Shown here: positions 3,301 to 62,100 of the stretch, in pieces | Layout: every line of letters starts with the position of its first letter | How positions within the stretch are numbered: the stretch's first letter is position 1 | DNA from: Klebsormidium nitens | Lineage: Eukaryota; Plantae; Klebsormidiophyceae | Assembly: GCA_000708835.1 (NCBI GenBank) | Contig: DF237360.1 | Coordinates: 1-64,000 of the forward strand | Direction of reading: 5' to 3' | DNA length: 64,000 nucleotides | Translations under genes and position numbers: made by a program | Notes under the pieces: generated by a model | What the model was told of the DNA's origin: nothing | The model's database searches: none | The model's input: the letters and a program-made list of their open reading frames with translations, nothing else

Positions 3301-6300
3301 ATCTCTCCATACTTGGCCCTCCGCAACTTGAGCCCAAGCTTGGGAGTTCCAAGCGCACATAGAACCAGAATGAGCGACTCCAAATCTATGAGTCTAATCA
3401 CCTGGCCAAAAGTGCGCCCTGCAGATTGAACCTGCAATCGCCAAGCACATATAGAACCAGAGTAAGCGATCCCCGAGTGCCCGCCTCATAATCCAGTCAC
3501 TTTCAAGCATATTTGCGCCCCGCAGAGTGAACCCAAATCTGGAGTCCCAAGCAAACGCGAAAATCGAGTTGGCCCTCTGCGAAACTTGCTAGCGGAGCTA
3601 ACCACTTCCCAAACTTACGCCTCTCAGATTGAGGCCAAAACGGAGGTAATATGGGGCCAGCGCCGCCAGGCGATCCTAGACCGTGTGGTTCAACTGGGTG
3701 TCACTCACCTTGTCATGGGCACTGGGAAGGGCAGTCGTCGCCTCAGGTGAGCGTCTGCACCAAGTCATTTGTTGCCGTCTTAGACTAGTGGCTGCATCTG
3801 AACGGGTTAGCTCTTGGGTTCAGGTCAACTGAGTGTTTCAGTCAGCGAAAAATAGAGGTCTGAGTTAGACGGTTAGGGACTGCTTTGGAGGGGTGCGTTG
3901 CCGGTTGATTTGTTAGTTGGAAAGCATCTGACAAAGTAAAAGAAGTCTACTCTTCTCTGGCGAACACACAAGAGGGAAAAGAGAGACCTCAAAATCCGGG
4001 GGTCTTCTATTTGAAAGCCTATCAGGCGAAGGTTTCAATCCTTTGGCAATCTGAACAGGGTCACCTTGCACTTTACATTCTTGGCTTCGATGTTCTAGCA
4101 ATGGACCCGGGTTTCCCAAAAGTATTTGTGCCTCTCCCTGCAAAGCTGGCTCCAGTCAGTGCGCCCGCTCGATTCGTTCTCCCCATCCCTAGTTGCTTTG
4201 TACCTCCTGTGCAAAGAAACAACTGGGCACTCGTCCCCTTTGGAAAAAACACCTGATTGCTCGTCGAAGACGTTGTAATTCCTATTGATCTGCAAGGTTT
4301 GAACTGGCCTCTCAAAACTCAAGCGGGGAACAATCGCAGCCAACTCTGATCCTCCTTCGAGCAGCTCCTAGTGCCAGTTCGGCCCTTCGAATACCTGCCG
4401 ACCTGCAAATGGGGACTCCGAAACCCGCATTTGCCGACTTTCACTCGTTTTCTCGTGCAGTTTTCTCAGGAAGGAGAGCCTGACGGCGACCGTCTCGCGC
4501 GAGGCGCGTTGCCAGGTGTTCCTGGTGGCCAAGAACGGGAAGCTCGTCTCCCGCAGCTCCTACAACGCGGACGCCAGCGGACGTCCGAAGAAGCTGCAGA
4601 GCGCGACGTCCGCACCGGACCGGCTCATGAACGTTGACGCAGAGTGAGTGATTGCATGATCCCGTTCTGGCTGCTTCCAATCCACTTTGTGGGCAGTCGT
4701 TGTTTGAAGGAAGGTGTCTCTGTAATTAGAGACAATCCGACCTGACGGTAGAGAATTCGTGTGTATGTGCGCCCGAATAAAGTGAAGGGCTGAACCTAAA
4801 AAAGCGAAGGGGATATTCTGCTCAAATGAATGAGGGGCCATTACATTGATTGGACAGGCTTGTCGTTCTGAACGATCGTGTTTTCAGAACTGTAGTTCTT
4901 AAATTGCACGACGTTGATTGACGATGCAAGTTCGTTAAGCTTGATCGGAACGAAGTCAAAATCTGAAACCCAGACGGTCCGTCTTCGCAGAACCGCCTCC
5001 AATGCTTCGTTCGGCACGTCCTCGCACCCGCCCAGCAGCGTCGGCACTGTCTCCAGCGTATCCTCGACCCACTACCCCCCCTCCGAGATCGATGAGTCAG
5101 AGTCGCCGATCGGCAGCCCGTACCCCCCCCTGTTCCGGGCCACTTCCACCCCCCCGAGATCGCCCGACAGCCCGGTGACGGTCCTCACGAAAAACCTCGG
5201 CTCCCGCTCCGGGGGCCTCCAGCGAACATTCTCTAATCCCTCCCCGCTCGCAAAGGGGGGGGAGGTGTCTGACAGGCGGAGCCCCGCGCCGGCACCCCCC
5301 CGAACCGGAACACCCCCCTCGACGTACGACCTCGACTGGGCGCCGAAACCGCGACGCGCCACGTCCGTCGCCCTCCCTTCCACGCCCCCAGCCCCCCGGC
5401 CCAGCTCGGCCTCCCCCCGGGGGACCGGCGATGACGCCAGCGTCGTCGAGGATGACGTCAGCCAGGCGGGCAGTGACGTCAGCAGGGACGACGTGGCGGC
5501 GGCGGCGGAGCTTGCGGCGCTGCGCGCGCAGGTGCGGCAGCTGCGGCTGGTGAGCGAGATGCGCGCGCGCGAGGCGGCGCGCTTCGCGGAGCGACTCGAG
5601 GCCAAGGAGGGCGAGGCGGAGGCGGTGGGCAGGTGGGCTTTAGGGTTTTCAGGCGTTTAAAAGTATGGTCTGGGATCGTCGCGACGTTAGAGTGGCGAAT
5701 TTAGCCGTCTTTGGAGTGATTCATAGAAGAAGGAAGGGCGAAGCGTGAGCATTGGGCGAATGAGCTTTAAAACTTCCAGATACCCTTTTGTCTCAGAAAT
5801 TTTGGAAAGACTGTGGAGCGGTTCCAAGGCTAGAAAGGGCGAGGCAGAGGCGGACGCCCAAGCGAGGGGTCCAGATTTTGGATACCGCCTGTCCGGCCAT
5901 TCTAAACTCCCTGCTCCTGGATCGCCTGGCTAACTTGATGTCACTGTTTGTTGTCAGCTTCCATTGATGCAGGCGTCTCACGAAGAGAGTGTCTCGAAGA
6001 TTTATATCCACATTCACATCGATTTTGATTCGGCTGTCCATTATATTTCGACGGCGGAGCAAAACAGGGGCACTCCGAGTGGCAGTCTCATTCTCTGTCG
6101 CTGCTCATGGTGTTCCAGTTCGGGCGACTGGAGAATAGTTAAGACGTAGATTACCACTTGAGCCTTTCAGCTCAGTGGCTGACAATGTATCCCTTTCTGA
6201 CGCCCTTTTCCCTTTCCGCTCAGGCAATTGGCGGAAGAGTCAAGGAGACGGAAGGCCGCCGAGCGGACTGCCAGCCGGCTGGTTTCCGTTCTGGGAGAGA

Positions 6301-44127: not shown

Positions 44128-47100
44128 CTACGTCGGGGCTTTGCTCCCTGTCACGTGTTGCGCTATCCACCCCAGCCCGTCGTAGAGGCCCTCTCCCGTG
44201 AGCGCACAGCACGCCTGGATGTGCCAGTCGTGCCGCTTTATTGAGTGCAGCGAGAGCGCATCACTAATTTCGGCAGGGGACATCGCGTCTTTCAAGTCCT
44301 GCTTATTTGCAAACACAAGCACTACAGCGGGCTGCAAGTCTTCGTGCTCTAGTAGCTTGAAGAGCTCGTCCCGCACTATGGAGATCCGCGAGCGGTCCGT
44401 GCTGTCTACAACTATGATGACCGCGTGCGTGCCCCGGTAGTACGTCGCCCATGACGTCCGCAGACGGTCCTGCCCTCCGAGATCCCATACCTGCAGGGTT
44501 CGAGGTTGCAGGTGTTTGTGCATTTCCTTTGCGCGTTTTGTCGACAGAAACTTTTTGGCTGACCAGGGGAAACCGGATCGACGTGAAGCAGGCTGCCAGC
44601 TGTCCACCAGGATACAGGGAGGCAGGAAAGAAAGAGAATTGTGACGAGAGCTCGAGATGCTCAACATGTAAGGGACAAGTAAATTTCGAAGCCAGGTGGA
44701 GTGTGCAGAATATTGACAAGAGGGGAGAGTGAACAGCAGAGGGGCTCGCAGGTCGGTCGTTTCTAGAAAGAAGGAGACAACGATAATCACACCGCCAATA
44801 CTTCTTGCCTCTGCGGCTAGGGCAGAGCAGCTGTTGCAGGCGCGAATGGATTGCCCGGATGTTATCTCAAGGTGCTGCTCAGATGCGCAGGACGCACGTA
44901 GCTTCAACAGGCCAGAAAACGAAGACACCTTGATATGTCCGGTTAGGCCAAGACGTTTCCCAAACCGAACGGTAAAACCTTTACACGACTTCCGAACAAG
45001 CGTACTCCGTGCTTTAGTGGGGCAACTTGACGACGAAGGGCATCGAAATACTGCGACACAAATCATCGAACACGGATTTACCAGCATCGTCCTAATTGTC
45101 CAGCAGTACCAATGCCAACGAGCATAATGCTTGGGCCACGCGAGTGTTCATGCATTATCCACAAAGCACCAGCAATTTTAGTGAGAAGTGCGCAAATCTG
45201 GGGTCCCATACAGACGAAGCCCCGCCACCACTTGTCAAGGACACAACGTAAGCTTGCAACAAGTTCCGTCGAGTAGAAACTATCTGATGACAGAATTGGG
45301 TCTAATCTCAGGCCGTAGGTAACCCACTGCTAGAGGCATTCAATAAAGAGGGTCACGGGTGGGGTTAAGAGAATGAACAGTTGAGCTAGACGCCTAAAGC
45401 AGAAGCAAGACAGGTCAACTTCAGACTGGAGTCGACTGACCTTTTGCAAGCGTATACTGCTGACCATAAACTCACAGACCGTCGTTCAGCATGCCAAAGC
45501 GCAAGAACGGAAAATGATAATGAGTGGGAGGGGAGAGAGAGCTCACCTCGAATCTAATGTTTTTATATATCAGTTCCTCCACATTGCTCCCCACCGTTGG
45601 TTGCGTAACCACCACCTCCCCCAGATGCAGCTTATACAATGTTGTTGTCTTTCCTGCAAGTTCAGTAAGTTCGCGCTCATGAGTATTGATGTTCCAGAAA
45701 CACTGTGCATGATAGTGAAGCTTGTCAATGTGTGAAACGTAACCAGAAATTTATCCTCCATATCGAGTCCGGTTCCACAACCTCCGGTTGCTATACCTCC
45801 GCAGGTTAACGACATAATGAATGGCCGAACAGGATTTGCGGGCTGGGGCCATCAGATACTGTCGTACAGGAACATTTGGCTGGGGCCATACAGTCAAGGG
45901 GACTGGATTGGGCGTAGAAAGACTTGCAGTATGGAGCTGTGCAAACAGGTAAACAGTTCCCTTCTCCTTTATTGACGTGTCAGATCAATCTGCATTGCTC
46001 GTTGATACTAGATATTTTATCACATGACTTCTGTGGATTCAGGAGCTTATGATTCTATACTTGTCGAATTACCCCGTCGAGAAAGTTCAGAAGAGTGACT
46101 TTCTTACATAGACTTTCTAACTTAACCAACTAACTAACTGGATTCTCTTCAGAACTGCCACCGAGATGGCACTGGAATATATTTCTGAGGCATGGCCTGA
46201 GCCCATACCGTACGAAGGCAACAGGATCACAAGCACTGAAGAAACGGAAGTTTAATCTGCACTTATACTTCTTGACGAGGAGCTGTAACTTGCCTTGCGA
46301 GTAAAGAATCAACAAGTAAATTAGCAACTTCCTGTCAACAAGCTGGATCATGCTTAAGGGGTACTTCTAAACAGGGCGAGAGAGGGCAAAAGAACTTGAA
46401 TACTAAAGAGAGTAAACCTTGCTCGACTTCATGATATGCAGCCGAAATAGTTTGTCCAAACCCAGCCTGCCAACTGAAGAGCGCTATGAAGAAACAAAGC
46501 TTCACTGTACTGATCCCCTTCTCGCAGCGAGTGGAAGCACAGATTCATTTAAGGTTTAATCTACCCTGAGAAACAAGGGTTGGAAATTAGCGGCAGGTGT
46601 CGAGCTCTTAAAATCTTCAAAAGTTAGCCTGCGGAGCGCTTGAAATAGGACCTAATTCCTGATCCATAAAACAAGGGTGGAGGAGGCCCAACACCAAACG
46701 TGAAAGTCGTATTCAAACCCTAATTTAATCACTGCCTCTACTTAGACAGGCAACTGTCAGAAACGAGAGACTACATAACGTTGCAGAGAGACTGCCATAC
46801 AATTTGGAACTGCCAATTCGCTGATCCAGTAAGTTGACGACATCATGAGCCGGATAGAGGCTACCCACGCTTTCACCACTTCTGCAGAGTGTAAAGCCAG
46901 ACCAACTCCTTGACATTCTTTCACTAAGATCCAATCAAACTTTCATGATAAATTCTGGGGTTGTGGCGGCATTCTAAAACCAGGCATATGTTGACACCAG
47001 GGCGCAGCGCTGGCAGCAAGCGCTTCGAAGAGCATTCACCATTGGTATCTAATCTGGTTATTAGGCTCAACACTAGAAAGGGTGGGGTTAGTGAGGGGGT

Positions 47101-51300: not shown

Positions 51301-54300
51301 CTTCTCTCAAAAAGTGCAAGAGGAAGGAGAGGATCGCAGATGGTGCAGTGACACTACAAGCTTCTCCAACTTCGCTGTCTGCTGGTTTAGCCGTAACGAT
51401 TACGTCTCCTTTCAAAATGACTGCCACGCAACCCCTAGCTTCAGTACATAGCTGATTAAGGCGCTGACAGAGGCAGTTGTCGTAAGCAGTCGCTTCAGGT
51501 TTCAAGACGTCGTCGTTTTTCTTGGCCCTCGGCAACGAAGGGGCAACAAGGGAATCCGGCCTTGGCTAATCTGAGCTGCAAGAGTCTGTCAGGGACACCG
51601 ATTTCGTTCGTTTGTTTCGTTCTTCTCGACCATTCTCGTGCTGCAAGTATTCAGAGCATCTGTTAGCAGCTGCGGTCGGGGTGGAACATTCCTTTCCAGA
51701 TCTCCGTTTCTTTTAGCTAATTGCCTGCCTCCATAGGCAATTATCTCCTTCACCAGATATTACCCAGTATCTTTCATAAGCTGTGGGAGTTTCCGAGCTT
51801 CGCTGGCGGAGTTGTCGACGCCATGAAGCTGGTGAAAGAGTCATTGATCGGGATCTAGAAAACATGAGCAACTCCTGCGTACGTCTGATATCGGGCCCTC
51901 CTTTATGCAGTTGTTCCAACCGAGTACCTCCGAGCAAACGAATATGAGCGACCTGTCTGCAAGCATCCAGGTGAGCCTTACACGTACACTCGTGCAGAGA
52001 CGCACTTGCTTTTTCGCCGTGAAGATAACTCCACCCGTAGATCCTTCATCTCACGCCTATTCCGTGGTCTCGAACAAGACCCCCAGTGTGTTCCCCAGTG
52101 CCTCGGTCCGGACCGCCCTTTCCCAATGGAATGTGAATGAACAAGTTCTTACTCAATCCGTCAGTTGCTCGTCAATCTTCTGGCACTTCTTCTTGACGTC
52201 TTTTGTTCCGACGGGGCTGGCAGGATCTCCCCTCTTTCAATTCCTCATCGACGATGTCGATAATACTCAACTCCTACCATACGGATAGAAGACGCCAAGT
52301 GCCTGACGCTCTGTTCGTATGGCCCCGTCTTCCTTTCGTGCAATTGTCGACTGGCAGGAAGCTTGTCGATCCCCTGAATTGACGAAATATCTGATCCCCA
52401 TTTCCTACTATGCAGATGGAAGGTACCAAGTATTTGACGCTCGTGTCACATGGCCCTGTCTTCTTTACGTGCAATGTCCGACTGGCAAGAATTCTTGCTT
52501 ATACCGTAGATTAGCGAACTTCATACCCCCCGATCTCCTACTTTACAGATGAAAGGCGCCAATTATTGACACTCGCGTTGTAGGGCCCTGTCTTGTTCTC
52601 TTGCAATATCGAGCGGCAAAAATCCTGTCCTCAACCCTGCATCAAGGAGATATTAGACTTTCAATATCCTACTCTATACTTAAAGGAAGCCAAGTACCTG
52701 ACACTTGCATCATACGGCCCGCTCGTGCTCTCGTGCATCTGCATGCTGGCAGGACATTGTATTTCTCAGACTTTGATTCGACAAAACCTTAAATTTTCAA
52801 TCTCCTCTTTGCAGATGGAAGGCGCCAAGTACCTGACGCTCTCGTCGTACGGCTCGGTCGTGCTCTCGTGCATTGTCATGCTGCCAGAAAATCGTGTTCT
52901 TTAGACCCTAAATCGACAAATCCTGACATATCCAATCCTTTACTTGCAGATGGAAGGCGCCAAGTACCTCACTCTCGCGTCGTACGGCCCCGTCGTGCTC
53001 GCGTGCATCTGTGAACTGTCACAAACTTGTAATTCTTGAAGCCCAATTGACAGATTTCAAGACCCAATTTTCCTTGTGCAGATGGAGGGCGCCAAGTACC
53101 TGACGCTCGGGTCGTACGGCCCCGTCGTGCTCTCGTGCATCTTCGGGCTGGCCATCAGCTTCTTCGGCTTCTCGTGCCGCCAGGCGCTCTCCGCGACGTC
53201 GTTCACGGTGGTCGGGGTCACGAACAAGCTGCTGACGGTGCTCATCAACGTCACCGTGTGGAGCAAGCACGCGGGCACATTCGGGGTGTGCATGCTGCTC
53301 GTGTGCATCGGCGGGGGGGTGCTATACCAGGTACGGTATCGGTCTCGTAGGACTGCCAGAAATTTTCTTCTTTCCTCCCCCTGGGTTTGCACAATACTTG
53401 AGCAAGCAATGGCAAGGGGGTGCTATCTAGTCCGGTCCGAAATCAGAAGTCTAATTTTTGTCCTCCTTGGGGTTGCGCGATACGTGAGCACGCAAGCGCA
53501 TTCAGGTCTGCCTACCCAATACGTTCGCAAGAGGTCCGGTACTCTAACGAACCGAGTCGGCAGTGTCCTACTTCAATGTACAGTCAACCAGAGCTCTTCT
53601 CTCCATGCTGCACCAGTAGTTTTTGCCAAGGAGCTCCTCGACAAAAGTAGACATTGTAGCTCGAGAGCTGTATCAGATCATACGGCTTGGTTTAAGGCTG
53701 ACGCTCTTGGCAAGTCGTTAGAGCGCTTCGGCTGTCGACCAGGCGTCACTGAAAAGTCAACATCTCTGTTCCCGAGCACTTCGCCCCAGACCTTTGATAT
53801 GAATCTTGGGATGGAGCTTTGAGCAGTTCCAGAAACATCAATCCGTAAACATAATGTATTCCGTTGCTTTTGCTCTGCCGACCGGAGAATTGGTACCCGA
53901 CTCCTAATCGAACAAGGCGGCATTTGTATTTCCCAATCGGAAACAACATGTGTCTCGGCTTCGTTTCCGTCTTTTTGGTAGGGCCACCATAGGGTGTGCG
54001 CAATGGAGAGTCCGAAACCCGCACAATGTTGCGACTGTTTGCCAAATGCGTTCTGCAGCCGTGCAGATTCCGATCAACCGTTTTCGGATCCGGCTACTCG
54101 GATGAATCCGGTTCTGGTTTGGGTTCGCATTCGGGTTCGCAGTGTCCGAAATCTTCACGACTTCGCTACGTTTGCCGGATGCATTGCAGCCGTGCACGCG
54201 CAGAGGCCGGGAGCATGCACTCATCGTACGGCGCTTAATGGAAAGAAGCGAAATCCGGATTGTGCCAAAAAGTCGGCCCGAAACCTGCAAATTTTTACCG

Positions 54301-54712
54301 TTTGATTGCGAACCAAACGGTCATCTGTAGTTGGCGACGATTCTCACTGTTAGAGTAGAGCTTGTTGCAAGTAGTGTCTGAGCCCGTAATTTTTGAACGA
54401 GGCGAAACTTAGGAAAACTGGGAGACAGGTGAACGTAGATTATTACCATCCTAACACTGGCCGCCATGTTTGAACCATTCATGCTGTCTCCTTGTGCAGC
54501 AATCGATGACTCCTCCCAAGAAGTCGGAGACCCCTAAGCCGCCCAGAGGGGACGTTGAGGAAGCAGAGTCCACTTCGCTTCTCAAAGGGGCCTCCTCGAA
54601 AGGTGCGTCCGAACGTCCTCTTTTTCTCTTTTTCTACGTCGTCGAAAGGTGTGTCCGAACGTCCTCCTTTTCTGTTTTCTCGATTGGTGCACCGTCTACA
54701 AAAGCACGTTGA
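48321..54712 (+). CDS. Golgi nucleotide-sugar transporter, GONST3/GONST4 (GFT1, GDP-fucose) type; at least 7 exons
   Basis: Exons 48321-48626, 49328-49461, 50077-50122, 51088-51255, 51911-51970, 53082-53330, 54500 to 54602 or 54712 (3' end uncertain). Motifs: GYALTSSLLSIINKYA, NVDTFIIFRSSTPLLVAIAD, TEMVYIKHVV, WGLVYYNN, SCIFGLAISFFGF, SATSFTVVGVTNKLLTVLINV..W.KH. Confidence 0.92.
50571..50633. repeat. 31 bp direct tandem duplication in a transporter intron
   Basis: caaaatcgatcaccgt(t)tgctcattggatcgt occurs twice back to back. Confidence 0.85.
52270..53145 (+). repeat. 7 copies (~133 bp period) of acceptor + start of transporter exon 6
   Basis: Exon-start equivalents at 52285, 52416, 52549, ~52683, 52815, 52950 and 53082 (real: MEGAKYLTLGSYGPVVLSCI). 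Confidence 0.93.
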
Positions 54713-55959
54713 CACTTGGAAGTTACGTACTGACCACGAAAAGCAAGCCCGCTTATGCGGAATGCCGGAAAGTTGCCTGACGCCTGACGTCTTGGCCTAC
54801 GGCAAGAAAAGTGTAGCACCGCCCTCTTGGAAGGAATCAGACACGTGTCTCGCTGACGAAGTGATACGATTTGACACCCAGGTTGTATGTGGCTCTTACT
54901 TCGATGAACAAACTGCTTGTGTGTTCAAGTCCACTTTTGTAAGCGATTGCCTCCACTTGTTCCAGGGGGGGCCAGCTCCAGAGTGGAAGGGCGATAGAAG
55001 GGCGGCAAAGATATGCACTTCATGTACCTCAACACGGATTGTGTCCCGCAAGGAACTGTAAAGCCATCAGGTATGGTACGCTTTGTTGGTAACAGGTACA
55101 GCCTAGAAATTGGGTGGTTTCGTATAGAAGGGCGGACAAGGTGGATGCGTTGGACAATCGACTCGGTTGAGGAGTCAAGCGCCCTTTGTAGGACCTGTGT
55201 AGGAAACCGGATGGACGGTGATTTGACATACTTGGAAAAAAGCCGCGTCCAGGTTCTTACATCAACTTCTCTCGCAATTCGCTGTGGACATGGTTTCATT
55301 ACAGGATCCTACCGTTTTTCTCCTCCTTTCAAATGATGTTGATGTTTCGATCCGGAGTCAACATTGTTGAGGTTCTCAACGAATGTTTTCTTTACTGGGG
55401 TTGATCGGCACTGGTGAAAAAAGACCATCGGCTGTTGGCCGCCTGGTCCAAGCCCAAATGTAATTGCAACTTGCTGAGTATCATAACTGCATGGCAGCAT
55501 TGACATATTGAGAATACAATTAGTTTTACTTCCACTGGCTCGCTGTGTCAAACCGTTGGACTGTTGGCCGGACGGCCGCCCGGCGGGTACGGGCCGCCGC
55601 GGCCCATACCCGGGCCGGCCGGGCGTTGTTGCATATGCTGTTGCACTGCATGCGCCGCCGCGTATGACCCAGGACTCATTGACGAGATCTCATGATGTTT
55701 CATGACATTTGACTGGGCGGCCCGGGCAGATATGTACTGACGGTATATACGCCCATATATTGGCATGACTTTAGCTAGTATGATAAATGCAGGCGCGGCC
55801 GGTGCTTGAGCAAGCTATAATTAAGCCGATAAGTTCGTAGGATCAATGGATCATGCAGTGCGGATCGAGTATACGATCGAGCTTAAGTTAGATCTTATGG
55901 TTAAGTCGAGGAGCTCGCCATGTGCCAGCCAGCATGCGCACTGCGGGCAGCCATATGCC

Positions 55960-56016
55960 CATGGGAAAATTGCAGGCAGCTGCGGCAGCTGCCGGCCGGC
56001 CTGCAATTTTCCCATG
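55960..56016. other. Hairpin: perfect 18 bp inverted repeat with 21 nt loop in a convergent intergenic spacer
   Basis: CATGGGAAAATTGCAGGC (55960-55977) / GCCTGCAATTTTCCCATG (55999-56016). Confidence 0.85.
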
Positions 56017-56368: not shown

Positions 56369-57667
56369 TCACCTCGGACGATCAAAAACTTTGTCACACC
56401 ATACCGAAATGTTGCCATCCGATGCCAGAGCATCAGTCGCTAGGTCCCAAGTCAACCCATCGCTTACTTCGATCTGAATCTCTATGTTTTCCCTACCTTG
56501 CCGGCTACGCTTGTACGATGCCGATCTCCTCTCATTATCCCTTCCTATAGGAGACGGCTTTCCCGGCAGCAAAGCTCCGTTTCTATCAGATGGTGGCGCG
56601 CAAATTGGCTTCTCAATCTTACTTGTCCATGGCCGCGATTCAACCATAGGGGCAGCAACAAGCTTGCTCACTATACGACGCGCTTCCTTCTGTGCTGCTT
56701 GCCTGCCGCCGATTATTGTCGATGGGGACACAATCCATGCATGAGCAGGCCCCTCTACATTCAAACACCCAGACCACCCTTTAGGAGCAACCAGACCAAG
56801 AAAAGCCGAGCTCTTGTGCGGCTGCTTTGCTGGCTGGAGGAAGTTAGAGCTCTGCCCTTGCTTTCTCCGTGGTGCTGCTGAGACACTCGAAACAAGATTG
56901 AGGGCGGGGCCCCGAAGCCAGAAACTCGAACCGCGACAAGCGGCGACACCGCCATGCAGACGCAGTGTCTGGCTTTCAGGGCTCCAAGTCTACACAGGTG
57001 CCACACAAAGCAGGTGACATCAAGTTAGAACCTGACCTGACACTAAGGTTATGCAAGGCTAGGCTCAGGTATCAGAAGTAGGCATGGAATATGTCACTGA
57101 TTTGCCTTCATTTCGAACATCTTGCTTGCCAAAGTGATGTCCAGAAAAAGGACTTGTCATGGTGGTCAAAAGCGAAAAGCTTCCAGCCATTCAAGGAGAG
57201 ACTATGCAACTAATCCAAGGTGGATTGGATTGGCTCTGCTCAGCAAGTCACACCCTCACCATCGCCTCGCCCCTCAGTTGCAGCCCCGACGCAAGGTCCT
57301 GCACATAGACCCGGCCCTCCACATCCACGTCCCCACCACTTTCTCGCACTGAAGCCTTTTCTGACATGAATCTGTAAGCGATTGCTCCTTTCATCAGGAT
57401 TTCTCCTACCAAGCCCAATGCCAAGCCGCCACTCAGATCCTGGCCATACTCAACAGACGCAGACCTAATATGCCAAGCCAGCCTGGTCGTCCCTTCCAAG
57501 TCGAGCTCGTAGTTTTGCCACACTACACCTTCAGAATAAAGCACTGGCTTCTCTGAATCCTTCGAATTGCGCGTCAGCTTTTCCTGCTCTGCTGTCGAGT
57601 TGACGTGGTGCGAGGAAGCAGGACCGTGGTTGCTCCTTGATCCAACTTGTCCCATATTTGCAGAGAA
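56369..57667 (-). CDS. Candidate LptC-like (cyanobacterial-type Lpt beta-jellyroll) protein; two exons resolved, N-terminus unresolved
   Basis: Exons 57667-57260 (or from ATG 57655) and 56989-56369 join in frame via GTGAGG...GTGTAG. Protein contains YELDLEGTTRLAWHIRSASVEYGQD...GEILMKGAIAYRFMSEKASVRESGGDVDVEGRVYVQDLASGLQLRGEAMTWSPESQTLRLHGGV and IQIEVSDGLTWDLATDALASDGNISV, an alternating beta-strand pattern resembling cyanobacterial LptC as I remember it. Family call is pattern recognition, not a search result. Confidence 0.55.
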
Positions 57668-58675
57668 CTATGTACAGAGTCAGGATAAGGCGGCTAGAGC
57701 ACCAAACAAATGGGAGCTTCAGCATTCCCAAGACGTGATTAAAGGTTCGTGAGTGATTGCCATGAGGGCAGTGCTCGCTTCAAGGTCAATGAAGGGCTTG
57801 ACAAGCTTGTCAGACAGAAGTGGAAGCAATGCCAGGAAGGGAGCTGGGCACTAGCTAGGAGGCCACTCGCCCGCCAAGTGACTGATTCAAGCCAATGCTG
57901 CAAATGCCTGCCGCCATCAATCCTCCACAAGCTCAGAACATTCATCCGTAGCCCGTCCTAGTCCCTTCGTATCAGCTATACAAGCTTCGGAGTTCTTTTG
58001 AACCATCATTCTCCTTGTGATCGTAGAGAAGTTTCTTGCAAAACCTAGAAAATGTGCAATAGTAGCGACCTATCGTGTTTCTAACTGTAATTTGTAAAGC
58101 GATTGCATCACGAAACAAGGGCAAGACCTGTGCGCGCTGATTGTCCTGTGCAAAGCTGCACAAACCTGGCCGTGAGCCCGTCCTTTCTAGCGGGACAACA
58201 GCTGCTCCTGATCTTCCAAGTAGAAACAAAGCATCTCTCCGAATCTACCGTACGAGCCCCAGAACCGAATCGGGTCCAGAAGTGGATCGAGCTGACCCAG
58301 AAGTGGATCAATTTGTTTGTTATCTTGTTCCAGTCTACGCCGATCGCCGATACCTATAGTCGTTTTGCATTTTATGACCAAAAACAAAGGTTTTCAGGGC
58401 TGCAAGGACCTCCTCTTGGCCAAATTTTAATCCGTTTGCAGCCCTAGATGAGGTTTAGAAAAAGAGGATATGCGGCGAAAACTGATCGCAAATTGGTTCA
58501 GATTTGATCACAGCATTGCAGATAAACGCTCAAAAAATAAGGTGAGCCGGTATAGGGTCCCGTACGGTAGGTACAAAACAGAAGCTGCCAACAAACAAAA
58601 CCATGCACTGATCAATCCATGAAAATGGTGAAGTTAAGCTTATAAGTGAAGCTTCTCTGGTACCTACCTACGTGC

Positions 58676-58705: not shown

Positions 58706-59175
58706 TGGCACAGATTTGTCGCGGCGACCTTCGCAATAGAGGTCCGCTCAGGACAGTCGCTCCAATGGACAGCGATAAACCCAATCGGACGGTCAGTATC
58801 GCTCAGATGAGGTTTCGACTTCCCGCTGTTTTTTACGAACAAGAAAGAAGGGTGGCCAAATTTGTGCTTCTGCCAGTGCTGCTTCTGAGGACGCTTTTTC
58901 GATACGGCCAGCTATTCAGAAAGAGGAGAAGCTGGGGCGCTCACAACTGAATGCATTGGGCAAGCTGGGTGACGCTGGGTAACGGGCAATTGGAGGGATC
59001 GCCTGCGGAAGTTCTGGTCCTGAGTACCGTGCGATCAAGGAGGCGTGCACATCAACTCTTGTCAGGGGCCAGATTAGAGTCGCTCTGCTGCTGACCAGGC
59101 GTCTTGTTAAAAAAGAACTGCTGAAAGTTGGAGGAGCTCACTTGGTAAACTGTGGGTTCCTTCCATATAAGAAGT

Positions 59176-62100
59176 ATGGGCCGGGAGATGGTAACTTCCC
59201 CTGGGGCAGGCGAAGGGCGGCAGTCGCAGGTCCCCAGGCTAGTAATCACACGCATGGAGCTTGTGAACTTCAAGTCCTATGCCGGCACAAAATCCATAGG
59301 CCCCTTTCACAAGGTAAGACTGGCTCGTTTCATGAGTAATGTAGTTGGTCGCCGTTGCATATCCAAACGAAGGTAACAGCCAAACACTGTTTGGAATGCG
59401 GAGACCTTTGGAAGTCCTCTGCCTTTCAGTCTTGCTGGAAGGGGCCAACGTGCAGCCCACGCTGTTGTAGATCAATTGATCGTAAAATGGGCTTGCTTTC
59501 TGCTATGAAGGGTGTGAGTGTGATGCCCAGTCTACAGCCAAAGGAATGCTGTCATTCAAGAGCGACACCTGGTGGACCTGGAGAATCCTCAACGATTACC
59601 CGACGATAGGAAGCCTCAGCATTTGCAAATCTAAGAATCCAAGATTGCATGGCACTGCCAGTAGCAAAACCGTGTGACTGTGACCAACTCGTCTAGAAGA
59701 TCTTGGTGAATGGACTGCAAGTTCTCTGCTAGAACCTCCTCTGCATAATGTGGTGGCAGTCTCGCAACGGACTTACGAAAGCTCTGATAGAGCAATCTTC
59801 TGCCACGATTCCTTCTTTTTTCTGCTCTTTCTCCCCCAAGGTCGCCGCTTATGTAGCGCCTGTACTCCTGCAGTGCTTCTCTTCTGTTGTTGGTCCAAAT
59901 GGGAGCGGGAAGTCGAACGTCATCGACGCCATGCTCTTTGTTTTTGGGAAGAAGGCAAAGCAGGTATGTCCGCTGAAACCTTACCGTGGCAGCCAGAAAG
60001 TTTTCCCTGCGTTGCCTCTCCCCAAGGGCTTTTCGCAAGCACATCTTGAGTTCATGGTGGTAGATTAATGGTGCACATCTGATTAGCAGAGTGGTAATGT
60101 GGGTCAAGAATGCTCACACAGTTTCGTCATTCAAGATTCTGCCCGCTGTGGAGTTTGGAGTGTAAAGGCTCCCATAGCTAGCGTTGCAAGTATCGTTTAT
60201 CATCGCCAACACTGATGAGGCACAATGATCGGACAGAAAATGTTGCCCCCCCATGTCTGCAGCTACGGCTCAACAAAGTCTCGGAGCTGATCCACAACTC
60301 GACAAACCATCAGAACCTGCCTTATGCAGAGGTCTCGGTATACTTCCAGATGATCGTTGACTTGGTAAGCGATCCATTCTTTCCAGACCAGTGTGTCTCC
60401 AAAGTTGCTGGACCTTCAGACATGATCAAAGCTGGTCATGCCTCTCGTAGGGCAGAATTACTTTGGAGGCCATTGAACAATGATATCTACACGCAAGCCC
60501 TGGGCAATCTTTGAATACGTCCTTCTCCGGGGGAGGGACCCCAGCGACCATCCACTGTACAGAACTTTCCGTTCATAGAGAAGAAGGTTCGAACTAACCA
60601 GATAGACATGACATACTCTGTTCAATGATCGACGTGCAGGATGATGAGAACTCAGAGCCCGTGCCGGGGACTGAGCTCGTGGTAACTAGGCGCGCCAACC
60701 GGGACAACAGTTCTAAGTACATGATCAACGGCAGGAACAGCACGTTCACAGAGGTCACGGAACTGCTCAAAGGGAAGGGCATCGACCTTGACAACAACCG
60801 CTTCCTGATCCTCCAGGTGGGGTGCTGTGCTCTCTTTCAGTGAATTGCAAACTTTCAAGGTTTGTGCCCATACCAACTTGACATGGGCGGTGGCTGAGTT
60901 GCGATTGGCAGTGGCTGAGGTGTATTTAGCAGAATGACATGTATCAGGCTGCGTCAAGCAAATAGTCCCAGTCAAGCCGTTCGCTGCTTCGATTCGCTAC
61001 CCGCATCCAGGGCTTTCCACCAGAGGTCAACCATCCACTTGCTGAAGTAATTGCTTCACGAAGAGCCTTCCTGTGCTAGACTCATGGTATGCACAGTCGC
61101 AAGCTCCAGGTGAGCGCCGCTTTCAAGGCCCTGTTTCTGAGGCGTGTGTTGCTGCTCAGGGCGAGGTGGAGCAGATTGCCATGATGAAGCCCAAGGCGCA
61201 AGGCCCCCACGACGAGGGCCTCCTCGAGTACCTCTCAGACATCATCGGCTGCGACCACTACAACGAGCGCATCGACCAGGCCAGCCAAAAGTGAGCAAGG
61301 ATCCTGGCTTTGGATTCGTTTTGGTGGAGCGGGGTTTCAAAGGGTTGCACTTGCAAGTATGTTCTGATGCAGTCACACAACGGCTGAACTAAGAAGTCTG
61401 ATGGCCTGTCTCCGAAAAGATTTGAGTCCGGTTCTGCAGATTGACCGCTTTGAGATTAGACAGCCGGTTGAGCTGTGCTGGCGTGTTGGTGCATTCTTGT
61501 ACCTCACCGGTGGTCCTACTCAAATTTGATATCATATTCCTTGAAAAATCCCGTGCCTGTTTGTCTCGAATATAGAAGTTCCACGTCGCTTCAAAACGAG
61601 CTTGCCGTCAGGTGTGGTTGTGAGAGTTCGTTTCGTCGTCTCTGTTCGGATCACGAGCTGGTCGATCGAAGCTCTAAGGCATCTGTCTCTGCAGGGTCGA
61701 GCAACTGAGCGAGGAGCGCACAGGGAAGCTCCAGCATGTCAAGATTGCGGAGAAGCAGATGTCCAGCCTCGAGGTAAGTCTGAGCTCTGGAAGTCACCCC
61801 ATGAGGAAAATCAGCAGGCTCCTTTGCAAGGAGACTGGTACCAGCTTTGAGCGAACCTCGAAGCAGACAGGAAGCAGATCATGGAAAGCGTCAGGCTTTG
61901 GACAGGCTCACCTCGCGGTTGTTGTCTCTATTCGACATTATCAAGAGCACCCCTCCTCATTTGCCGTTACAAATTCGCGGTCTCGTCGAAGTTGACTAGC
62001 TTGTGCAGATTTTGGGCTGCCATACAAGAACTCGTGGCTTCAAAGTCGTCCTGTTGGGTGCTAGTACTGATTCCTTTGTCGGTGGGACACGTTCTGATAC

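Follow-up and report, generated by a model that had tools for sequence, protein, structure and literature searches.

Lpt Proteins and a Relative in Klebsormidium

In the bridge that transports lipopolysaccharide, LptC supplies the first soluble beta-jellyroll. The subject here is KFL_004110090, a nuclear gene of the streptophyte alga Klebsormidium nitens whose product resembles LptC. It lies on the minus strand of a window of 64,000 nucleotides (positions 1 to 64,000 of contig DF237360.1, assembly GCA_000708835.1), the window being the whole stretch of DNA that was analyzed, and its product is annotated at NCBI as a "hypothetical protein". A preliminary description, made from the sequence alone, had suggested that a gene in this region was related to cyanobacterial LptC and might be a relic lipid bridge of the plastid envelope. 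As described below, we think that the protein is probably a eukaryotized descendant of cyanobacterial long-form LptC, and the mechanism we favor is that of a cytosolic, membrane-peripheral lipid handler.

The closest described relatives are the long-form LptC proteins of cyanobacteria, for example B8HPU8 from Cyanothece sp. PCC 7425 (an "OstA family protein"), WP_158234545.1 from Limnothrix and MBO1349839.1 from Hormoscilla, which carry the Pfam domains PF06835 and PF03968 and the NCBIfam model TIGR04409. The N-terminal jellyroll of the K. nitens protein is homologous to theirs residue for residue, at an identity of only about 17-21%. Both share a near-invariant tryptophan (W61 of the query) and a W-x-P motif after the sixth strand, and the later L-x-W...G-N-[IV] beta unit of the cyanobacterial proteins is recognizable in the query. 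The differences are equally clear. The cyanobacterial proteins have a hydrophobic N-terminal segment and a lipobox-like cysteine, whereas the eukaryotic proteins have neither; the K. nitens protein is without most of the LptA/OstA-like repeats and does not finish with the VVTEI-P sequence at its C-terminus; and it has a eukaryote-specific insert between the jellyroll and the C-terminal unit, which is gapped in all of the cyanobacterial rows. Unlike cyanobacterial LptC, it is encoded by a spliced nuclear gene that is not beside any lpt gene.

The cyanobacterial set deserves a comment of its own. In all but one of its members, the N-terminus is a hydrophobic stretch with a lipobox-like [AGS]-C at its end, and Cys28 is nearly invariant. 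This pattern suggests that these LptC proteins are lipoproteins rather than being helix-anchored like E. coli LptC.

The proteobacterial LptC proteins (E. coli YrbK, structures 3MY2 and 4B54; the LptB2FGC complexes 6MIT and 6MJP) are the best structural matches of the predicted model, but the transmembrane helix that they insert between LptF and LptG is absent from the query and there is no LptB2FG context. The jellyrolls of LptA, LptH and the LptD N-terminal domain belong to the same fold class and are second-tier matches with lower scores than LptC; the C-terminal unit of the query resembles repeats of this type, and the query has no signal peptide. In plants, the known Lpt relatives are TGD4 and LPTD1, which are LptD-related beta-barrels of the chloroplast outer envelope tied to lipid import and remodeling (2025 review, 2026 preprint). 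These are barrels and not LptC-type jellyrolls; no sequence relation to the query was seen and none was looked for. In reviews of lipid traffic between the endoplasmic reticulum (ER) and the plastid and of outer-envelope barrels, TGD4 and LPTD1 are the sole Lpt relatives listed, and counterparts of LptC or LptA do not appear. Literature searches on LptC in plants, mosses and Archaeplastida, and on the KFL_004110090 locus tag, found no description of the family, and so it is an anchorless eukaryotic variant of LptC that was previously undescribed in the literature searched.

Homology to LptC

An exhaustive phmmer search against 1.84 billion representatives at E<=1e-3 returned 22 matches, consisting of three Klebsormidiophyceae pieces, 16 LptC proteins, one moss protein (Physcomitrium patens XP_024375313.1, E 2e-7), a 464-aa transcript product (P0009, E 5e-6) and one planctomycete protein. 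The 16 LptC proteins (178-571 aa) are members of Pfam PF06835, and 14 of them, all except P0022 and P0023, also belong to PF03968 (LptA / LptD N-domain). All three of the organism-named clusters are cyanobacterial (Cyanothece PCC 7425, Hormoscilla and Limnothrix). Five of the LptC matches were scanned with the NCBIfam LptC equivalog TIGR04409 and scored 95-140 bits, well over its cut-off of 38. The matched region, about 40-165 of the query against about 50-160 of the LptC proteins, is the core of the LptC profile. The kinship with multi-repeat cyanobacterial LptC that had been claimed for this gene is thus borne out, as the detectable bacterial relatives are of the long type and the named clusters are all cyanobacterial.

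Profile-profile comparison gave the strongest result. With hhalign, the eukaryotic family (eight rows) matched 17 cyanobacterial LptC proteins at a probability of 98.8% (E 4.4e-17, 280 columns), three Klebsormidiophyceae orthologs did so at 98.2% (E 4.5e-14, 235 columns) and the mosses alone at 82.8% (E 9e-6, 300 columns), scores that are inflated somewhat because the cyanobacterial template set was gathered with this query. The same three queries against the reversed template gave probabilities below 1% and E values of 0.07-0.5, and the way in which the template was gathered cannot explain a margin of about 13-16 orders of magnitude over this control. In tblastn, the cyanobacterial LptC proteins P0012 and P0040 and the moss proteins match 57541-57260, and the repeats of P0012 and P0040 give weak matches at 56464-56408.

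Other searches found less. A word search found only a prokaryote-style open reading frame (ORF) call of an ortholog with exon 1 and the annotated K. nitens protein with exon 2, and a profile search beyond the word search added only the mosses. NCBIfam was blank for the exon pieces, sequence searches of the PDB with the exon pieces and with the whole protein gave nothing meaningful, and BLASTP to E. coli LptC and LptA likewise gave nothing meaningful.

The planctomycete protein stands apart from the other phmmer matches. HUB24180.1 (P0007), a protein of 2047 aa from a Tepidisphaeraceae metagenome-assembled genome, is the only bacterial match without the LptC Pfam domain (E 1.4e-6). It has four matched stretches and 36% identity over residues 67-125 of the query, and it may be a giant protein with repeated jellyroll-like beta units.

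Predicted Fold and Domain Layout

AlphaFold2, run with a 26-row alignment, predicts eight long antiparallel strands over residues 39-167, with a predicted local distance difference test (pLDDT) score above 90 for residues 40-160. Further hairpins are predicted at 205-219 and 302-330 and one helix at 227-242, and residues 1-38, 169-202 and 268-295 are predicted to be disordered. The alternating hydrophobic pattern of the strands is retained in the predicted jellyroll. The top Foldseek matches in the PDB are all LptC, namely 6mit_C (E 8e-6), 6mjp_C, 4b54 and 3my2, followed by LptA, LptH and the LptD N-domain; the LptC matches have template modeling (TM) scores on the target of 0.55-0.66 and root-mean-square deviations of 2.8-5.4 A over 108-144 columns. 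A control refold with only the eight eukaryotic rows gave the same strands, pLDDT 80-92 over the domain and LptC as the top five PDB matches; over residues 40-160 the two models have pLDDT values of 80-96. Therefore, the jellyroll assignment is independent of the bacterial rows. The preliminary description had proposed a structure prediction as a check on its LptC assignment, and an Lpt-type beta-jellyroll with LptC as its best PDB match is what the prediction returned. We are confident that residues 39-167 are an LptC-derived jellyroll.

The first part of this jellyroll (residues 39-132; 57260..57541, minus strand) is supported by phmmer, hhalign, tblastn and the AlphaFold2 strands over 39-135. 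The second part (residues 133-167; 56885..56989, minus strand) contains strands at 140-151 and 155-167 and the W-x-P-E motif, the tryptophan of which (W142) aligns with a tryptophan that is invariant in the cyanobacterial LptC set. The motif WHIRSASVEYGQD, quoted in the preliminary description, is present, with the spacing W-x-I-x6-Y-x2-D and so one residue more than the x5 given there.

The eukaryote-specific insert follows. It holds the best conserved block of the Klebsormidiophyceae proteins, which includes a predicted basic amphipathic helix (residues 227-242; 56660..56707, minus strand; hydrophobic moment 1.07). In Physcomitrium, isoform X2 (P0006, 461 aa) lacks about 69 residues that are found in a 530-aa transcript product and in the Ceratodon protein (P0047/P0048). 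These residues make up the insert that separates the jellyroll from the later repeats (alignment columns ~375-455), which, from these products, the mosses seem to splice in or leave out.

A single C-terminal beta unit (residues 300-333, GLTWDL...ASDGNISVWC; 56387..56488, minus strand) completes the protein. It is recognized by hhalign, by weak tblastn matches and by AlphaFold2 strands at 302-330 (pLDDT ~83). The corresponding motif GLTWDLATDALASDGNISV is also present, with five residues from GLTWDL to ASDG where four had been counted. From the alignments, this unit is read as what is left of the LptA/OstA-like repeats that come later in cyanobacterial LptC. Compared with the long form, in which an LptC domain is combined with LptA/OstA-like repeats in about 370-570 aa, the mosses align over about 300 columns and K. 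nitens has one later unit in 338 aa. All three Klebsormidiophyceae proteins end directly after this unit, while the moss proteins extend for about 180 residues of beta repeats beyond the K. nitens C-terminus; tblastn found no further C-terminal exons matching the moss extension within the window.

Gene Model, Orthologs and Selection

The motifs quoted in the preliminary description lie in two ORFs on the minus strand, 57655-57248 and 56764-56369, which join in frame through a canonical GT-AG intron into a spliced product of 338 aa. Coding exon 1 (57260..57655; residues 1-132) opens with the ATG at 57655-57653, and coding exon 2 (56372..56989; residues 133-338) is followed by a TGA stop codon at 56369..56371. 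Between them lies a phase-0 intron of 270 nt (56990..57259), with its donor GT at 57259-57258 and its acceptor AG at 56991-56990. The donor GTGAGG follows the Met132 codon (57262-57260) and the acceptor TGTAG precedes the Thr133 codon (56989-56987). The join had been placed exactly, between M132 and T133, that is between YRFMSEKASVRESGGDVDVEGRVYVQDLASGLQLRGEAM and TWSPESQTLRLHGGV. Exon 2 matches the annotated K. nitens protein (P0002, 338 aa) with 100% identity and 100% query coverage, and the spliced translation of the whole model is equal to that protein in sequence and length. The earlier claim of a spliced, intron-containing nuclear gene in a streptophyte alga therefore holds for this two-exon model. 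The upper bound of 57667 given for the gene does not, as this position is non-coding and is simply the first base after an AG that lies 12 nt upstream of the ATG.

Orthologous Klebsormidiophyceae loci are present in a Logan contig of SRR23617307 (L001) and a Joint Genome Institute (JGI) metagenome contig (L002), with protein identities to K. nitens of 74-76% and about 50%, respectively. Both share the ATG, the phase-0 intron position and the stop with K. nitens. The nucleotide alignment with L001 has only in-frame indels in the exons (9, 9 and 6 nt), and in-frame indels are also found in exon 2 of L002. The intron and flanks are diverged from L001 and rich in indels that are not multiples of three; the stop is at the same position in L001, the alignment decays beyond it, and L002 ends likewise. 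The intron at this position measures 306 nt in L001, 497 nt in L002 and 347 nt in a moss genomic contig (L006). The ratios of nonsynonymous to synonymous substitution rates (dN/dS) for the three pairs among K. nitens, L001 and L002 are 0.27, 0.24 and 0.30, and so the gene is under purifying selection, including over the jellyroll. The shared start, intron and stop in two orthologous loci, together with the in-frame exon indels and the low dN/dS, indicate that this is more than a chance ORF.

Age and Origin of the Eukaryotic Family

Homologs were detected at E<=1e-3 only in Klebsormidiophyceae, in mosses and in the one transcriptome that contains P0009; none were detected at this threshold in chlorophytes, red algae, glaucophytes or seed plants. 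The proteins are annotated as hypothetical or uncharacterized in Klebsormidium, Physcomitrium and Ceratodon. In the moss contig L006, ...CQVL and TWEAV... are separated by a phase-0 GT-AG intron, at a position homologous to that of the K. nitens intron between ...GEAM and TWSPE.... This shared position implies that the ancestor from which Klebsormidiophyceae and land plants descend already possessed the gene in a nuclear, spliced form.

In a phylogenetic tree, six eukaryotic sequences form one clade with 100/100 support, and the stem of the clade measures 2.58 substitutions per site. With E. coli LptC as the root, this clade falls among the cyanobacterial-type LptC proteins, but the root is a single very long E. 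coli branch that is not trustworthy and the eukaryotic stem is itself very long, and so nesting inside the cyanobacteria, which the preliminary description had proposed as a check, is not demonstrated. We consider a cyanobacterial ancestry of the family quite likely.

Endosymbiotic transfer from the plastid ancestor is the simplest origin, because all of the named relatives are cyanobacterial and have the long architecture. The other possible origin is horizontal transfer to an early streptophyte from a free-living cyanobacterium or another bacterium. The narrow distribution given above would fit such an event. However, the divergence is so large that little can be concluded from a lack of matches at E<=1e-3, as even the moss protein is matched with an E value of only 2e-7; the named bacterial relatives are cyanobacterial with a long architecture in common; and the shared intron makes the gene older than the split between Klebsormidiophyceae and land plants. 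Horizontal transfer, which bears on the origin only, is therefore rather unlikely.

The N-Terminus

The preliminary description left the first exon unresolved, and a transit peptide might have been hidden there. The start codon is the ATG at 57655. In the three Klebsormidiophyceae loci, the reading frame is closed by stops 4, 29 and 12 codons ahead of the ATG, the translations upstream are unrelated, and the annotated KFL_004110090 starts at the same methionine. In tblastx, the upstream 1.7 kb matched only the opposite-strand exon of an SMC gene in L001 and nothing in L002. A hidden upstream exon or transit peptide is rejected on these grounds.

The region 57656..57979 (minus strand) is a 5' untranslated region (UTR) or promoter region. 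At the nucleotide level it is about 70% identical to L001; the alignment has indels whose lengths are not divisible by three, and every frame contains stops. K. nitens, L001 and L002 all have an AG exactly 12 nt upstream of the ATG (57669-57668 in K. nitens, where a pyrimidine-rich tract precedes it). The four codons that separate this AG from the ATG are not conserved across the three loci, and so a 5'-UTR intron probably ends here.

The protein begins with MGQVGS (57638..57655, minus strand), which is an N-myristoylation-type motif (Gly2, Ser/Thr6) by pattern match only. Four Klebsormidiophyceae N-termini read MGQVGS, MGQGES, MGQAGT and MGQAGT, and the following 30 or so residues diverge. 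All four satisfy the pattern of Met1-Gly2, an uncharged residue 3 and Ser/Thr6, and so the MGQxx[S/T] start of this lineage fits N-myristoylation as far as the pattern goes. The pattern is absent in the mosses and in P0009. An apparent moss start, "MGSQVG" in P0047, is an artefact that arose because a prokaryotic gene caller took a GTG as the start codon; the true start is the next ATG.

A plastid transit peptide would be an extension of at least about 40 residues that is rich in Ser/Thr and poor in acidic residues. In K. nitens, 38 residues with 4 acidic and 5 basic side chains precede the jellyroll, and in the mosses about 10 residues do so; the moss and P0009 transcripts have an in-frame stop before the first ATG and only about 10-20 residues ahead of the jellyroll. 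Neither K. nitens nor the mosses have an extension of this kind. The maximum 19-residue hydropathy within the first 60 residues is -0.15 in K. nitens and ranges from -0.41 to 0.74 among the eukaryotic proteins (0.74 being a moss), compared with 1.1-2.6 in 15 cyanobacterial LptC proteins. Judged by composition and hydropathy, the eukaryotic proteins are without a hydrophobic membrane anchor and without a presequence.

Proposed Role and Alternatives

The reading that we favor is as follows. The protein has kept the LptC jellyroll (39-167) and one later beta unit (300-333), and it has lost the bacterial N-terminal signal and lipobox anchor and most of the LptA/OstA-like repeats. It has gained the insert with its basic amphipathic helix and, in Klebsormidiophyceae, the N-terminal MGxxx[S/T] motif. 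The protein would be synthesized in the cytosol, with no cleavable transit peptide, and would be a peripheral membrane protein that is held by myristate (in Klebsormidiophyceae) and perhaps by the basic helix. By analogy with Lpt proteins, the hydrophobic groove of the jellyroll would hold the acyl chains of a lipid or glycolipid, and lipids may be relayed by edge-to-edge strand pairing with another jellyroll, either a second copy of the protein itself or one of the LptD-related proteins TGD4 and LPTD1, which are plausible partners. Of the parts of this reading, we lean slightly toward lipid handling, and for a cytosol-facing location we see the balance as even.

Several facts count against it, besides the poor rooting of the tree, its long stem and the query-gathered templates discussed above. 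Pfam gave no match at E<=10 for the exons, for the annotated protein or for the moss and P0009 homologs. The sole NCBIfam match of the annotated protein, to LptC TIGR04409 (E 0.0018, residues 24-146 on profile 24-146), scores 17.8 bits and is thus below the cut-off of 38, and a profile built from the eukaryotic proteins only matches no PDB sequence. Hence, of the profile check that had been suggested, the Pfam half came back blank and the profile-profile half matched cyanobacterial LptC; the original guess at the LptC family stands as remote homology, supported by phmmer and by hhalign against reversed controls, and the proteins do not reach membership in the curated model. In addition, the mosses have no Gly2, so that myristoylation cannot be the anchoring solution of the whole family, and the absence from K. 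nitens of the 180 or so C-terminal moss residues means that the two lineages may differ in function.

The jellyroll could instead have been re-used for a non-lipid role, for example as a protein-binding scaffold, and its LptC ancestry would then be uninformative on its present function. The long stem and the failure of the curated LptC model do speak of strong divergence; moreover, the anchor and most of the repeats are gone, the best conserved block is the new helix-bearing insert, and this insert is the segment that the mosses seem to splice variably. However, the hydrophobic strand alternation and an LptC-like fold are kept, with high model confidence, purifying selection extends over the jellyroll, and we know of no Lpt-type jellyroll with a non-lipid role. 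On balance, a non-lipid role is unlikely.

The preliminary description placed the protein in the plastid intermembrane space, where it would bridge the inner and outer envelope as LptC and LptA do; given the N-terminus described above, it would have to enter by a non-canonical route. Such import into plastids exists. The homology is indeed to a component of a periplasmic bridge, the LptD relatives TGD4 and LPTD1 reside in plastid outer envelopes, and the family is found in Klebsormidiophyceae and mosses, two lineages that keep plastid peptidoglycan. However, this location has no support in the sequence, which offers no transit-like extension, no upstream exon and no membrane helix. The jellyroll begins at residue 39 in K. 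nitens and at about 10 in the mosses with in-frame stops upstream, an inner-membrane anchor is missing, the conserved Gly2 motif suggests N-acylation in the cytosol, and K. nitens retains no more than roughly one and a half jellyroll units, few for a bridge. We therefore consider an intermembrane bridge improbable. About equally doubtful is a partly retained endosymbiont Lpt bridge, in which the first jellyroll would have been relocated to the cytosolic side, with myristate as its lipid anchor in Klebsormidiophyceae, and would dock on TGD4 or LPTD1 and carry lipids between the plastid and the ER or cytosol.

Finally, one could suppose that an all-beta repeat protein resembles LptC by chance, or that bacterial DNA contaminates the assembly, and cite the blank Pfam result and the tendency of beta-rich repeats toward spurious profile matches. 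Such an explanation is very hard to reconcile with the reversed-template E values of 0.07-0.5 against a true 4e-17, with LptC making up 16 of the 19 phmmer matches from outside Klebsormidiophyceae, with a fold match that is independent of the bacterial rows, and with a spliceosomal intron, conserved synteny with a head-to-head SMC gene and moss transcripts.

If the cyanobacterial ancestry is correct, a piece of the cyanobacterial lipopolysaccharide bridge has survived as a selected nuclear gene since at least the divergence of Klebsormidiophyceae and land plants. Plastid outer envelopes are known for LptD-like barrels, and a soluble jellyroll counterpart of LptC or LptA was not found in the literature searched; the family is also invisible to Pfam. 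The protein would be an example of a bacterial membrane anchor being dropped and possibly replaced by a eukaryotic lipid modification. Docking on TGD4 or LPTD1 from the cytosol, if true, would mean that a bacterial export bridge was re-used outside the organelle and would provide the first eukaryotic lipid carrier of the Lpt jellyroll type. An easy knock-out in Physcomitrium would offer a handle on the fate of the endosymbiont envelope lipid machinery and on the role of Lpt-type jellyrolls in plant lipid traffic.

Neighboring Genes and Other Features

The genes that adjoin the LptC-like gene include an SMC gene and others, none of which is an lpt gene. The SMC gene is arranged head to head with it, and this arrangement is conserved in L001. 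Its N-terminal exon (59152-59376, plus strand), which contains PRLVITRMELVNFKSYAG, is 91% identical in L001. Exon-like conserved blocks continue past this first exon to about 63900, and L001 has a Pfam SMC_N match.

Downstream of the LptC-like gene, the blocks 55174-54912, 54623-54461 and 53341-53163 are 74-95% identical to L001 and presumably represent exons of the gene that follows. Pfam gave no match for two long ORFs in 53163-55174. Farther away, a 319-aa ORF at 44128-45087 (minus strand) has an Arf-family GTPase as its C-terminal part (Pfam PF00025, E 1e-42). Other ORFs of the Arf family occur a few kb from the L002 ortholog (2017-2166 and 4080-4445), so there may be a loose conserved linkage between the Arf GTPase and the LptC-like gene.

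About 350 nt past the stop codon is a perfect 18-nt inverted repeat, CATGGGAAAATTGCAGGC at 55960-55977 and GCCTGCAATTTTCCCATG at 55999-56016, with a GC-rich spacer of 21 nt. A looser 26-nt inverted pair (55613-55638 and 55976-56001) overlaps it. The repeat could be a hairpin-forming element or the remnant of a small transposon.

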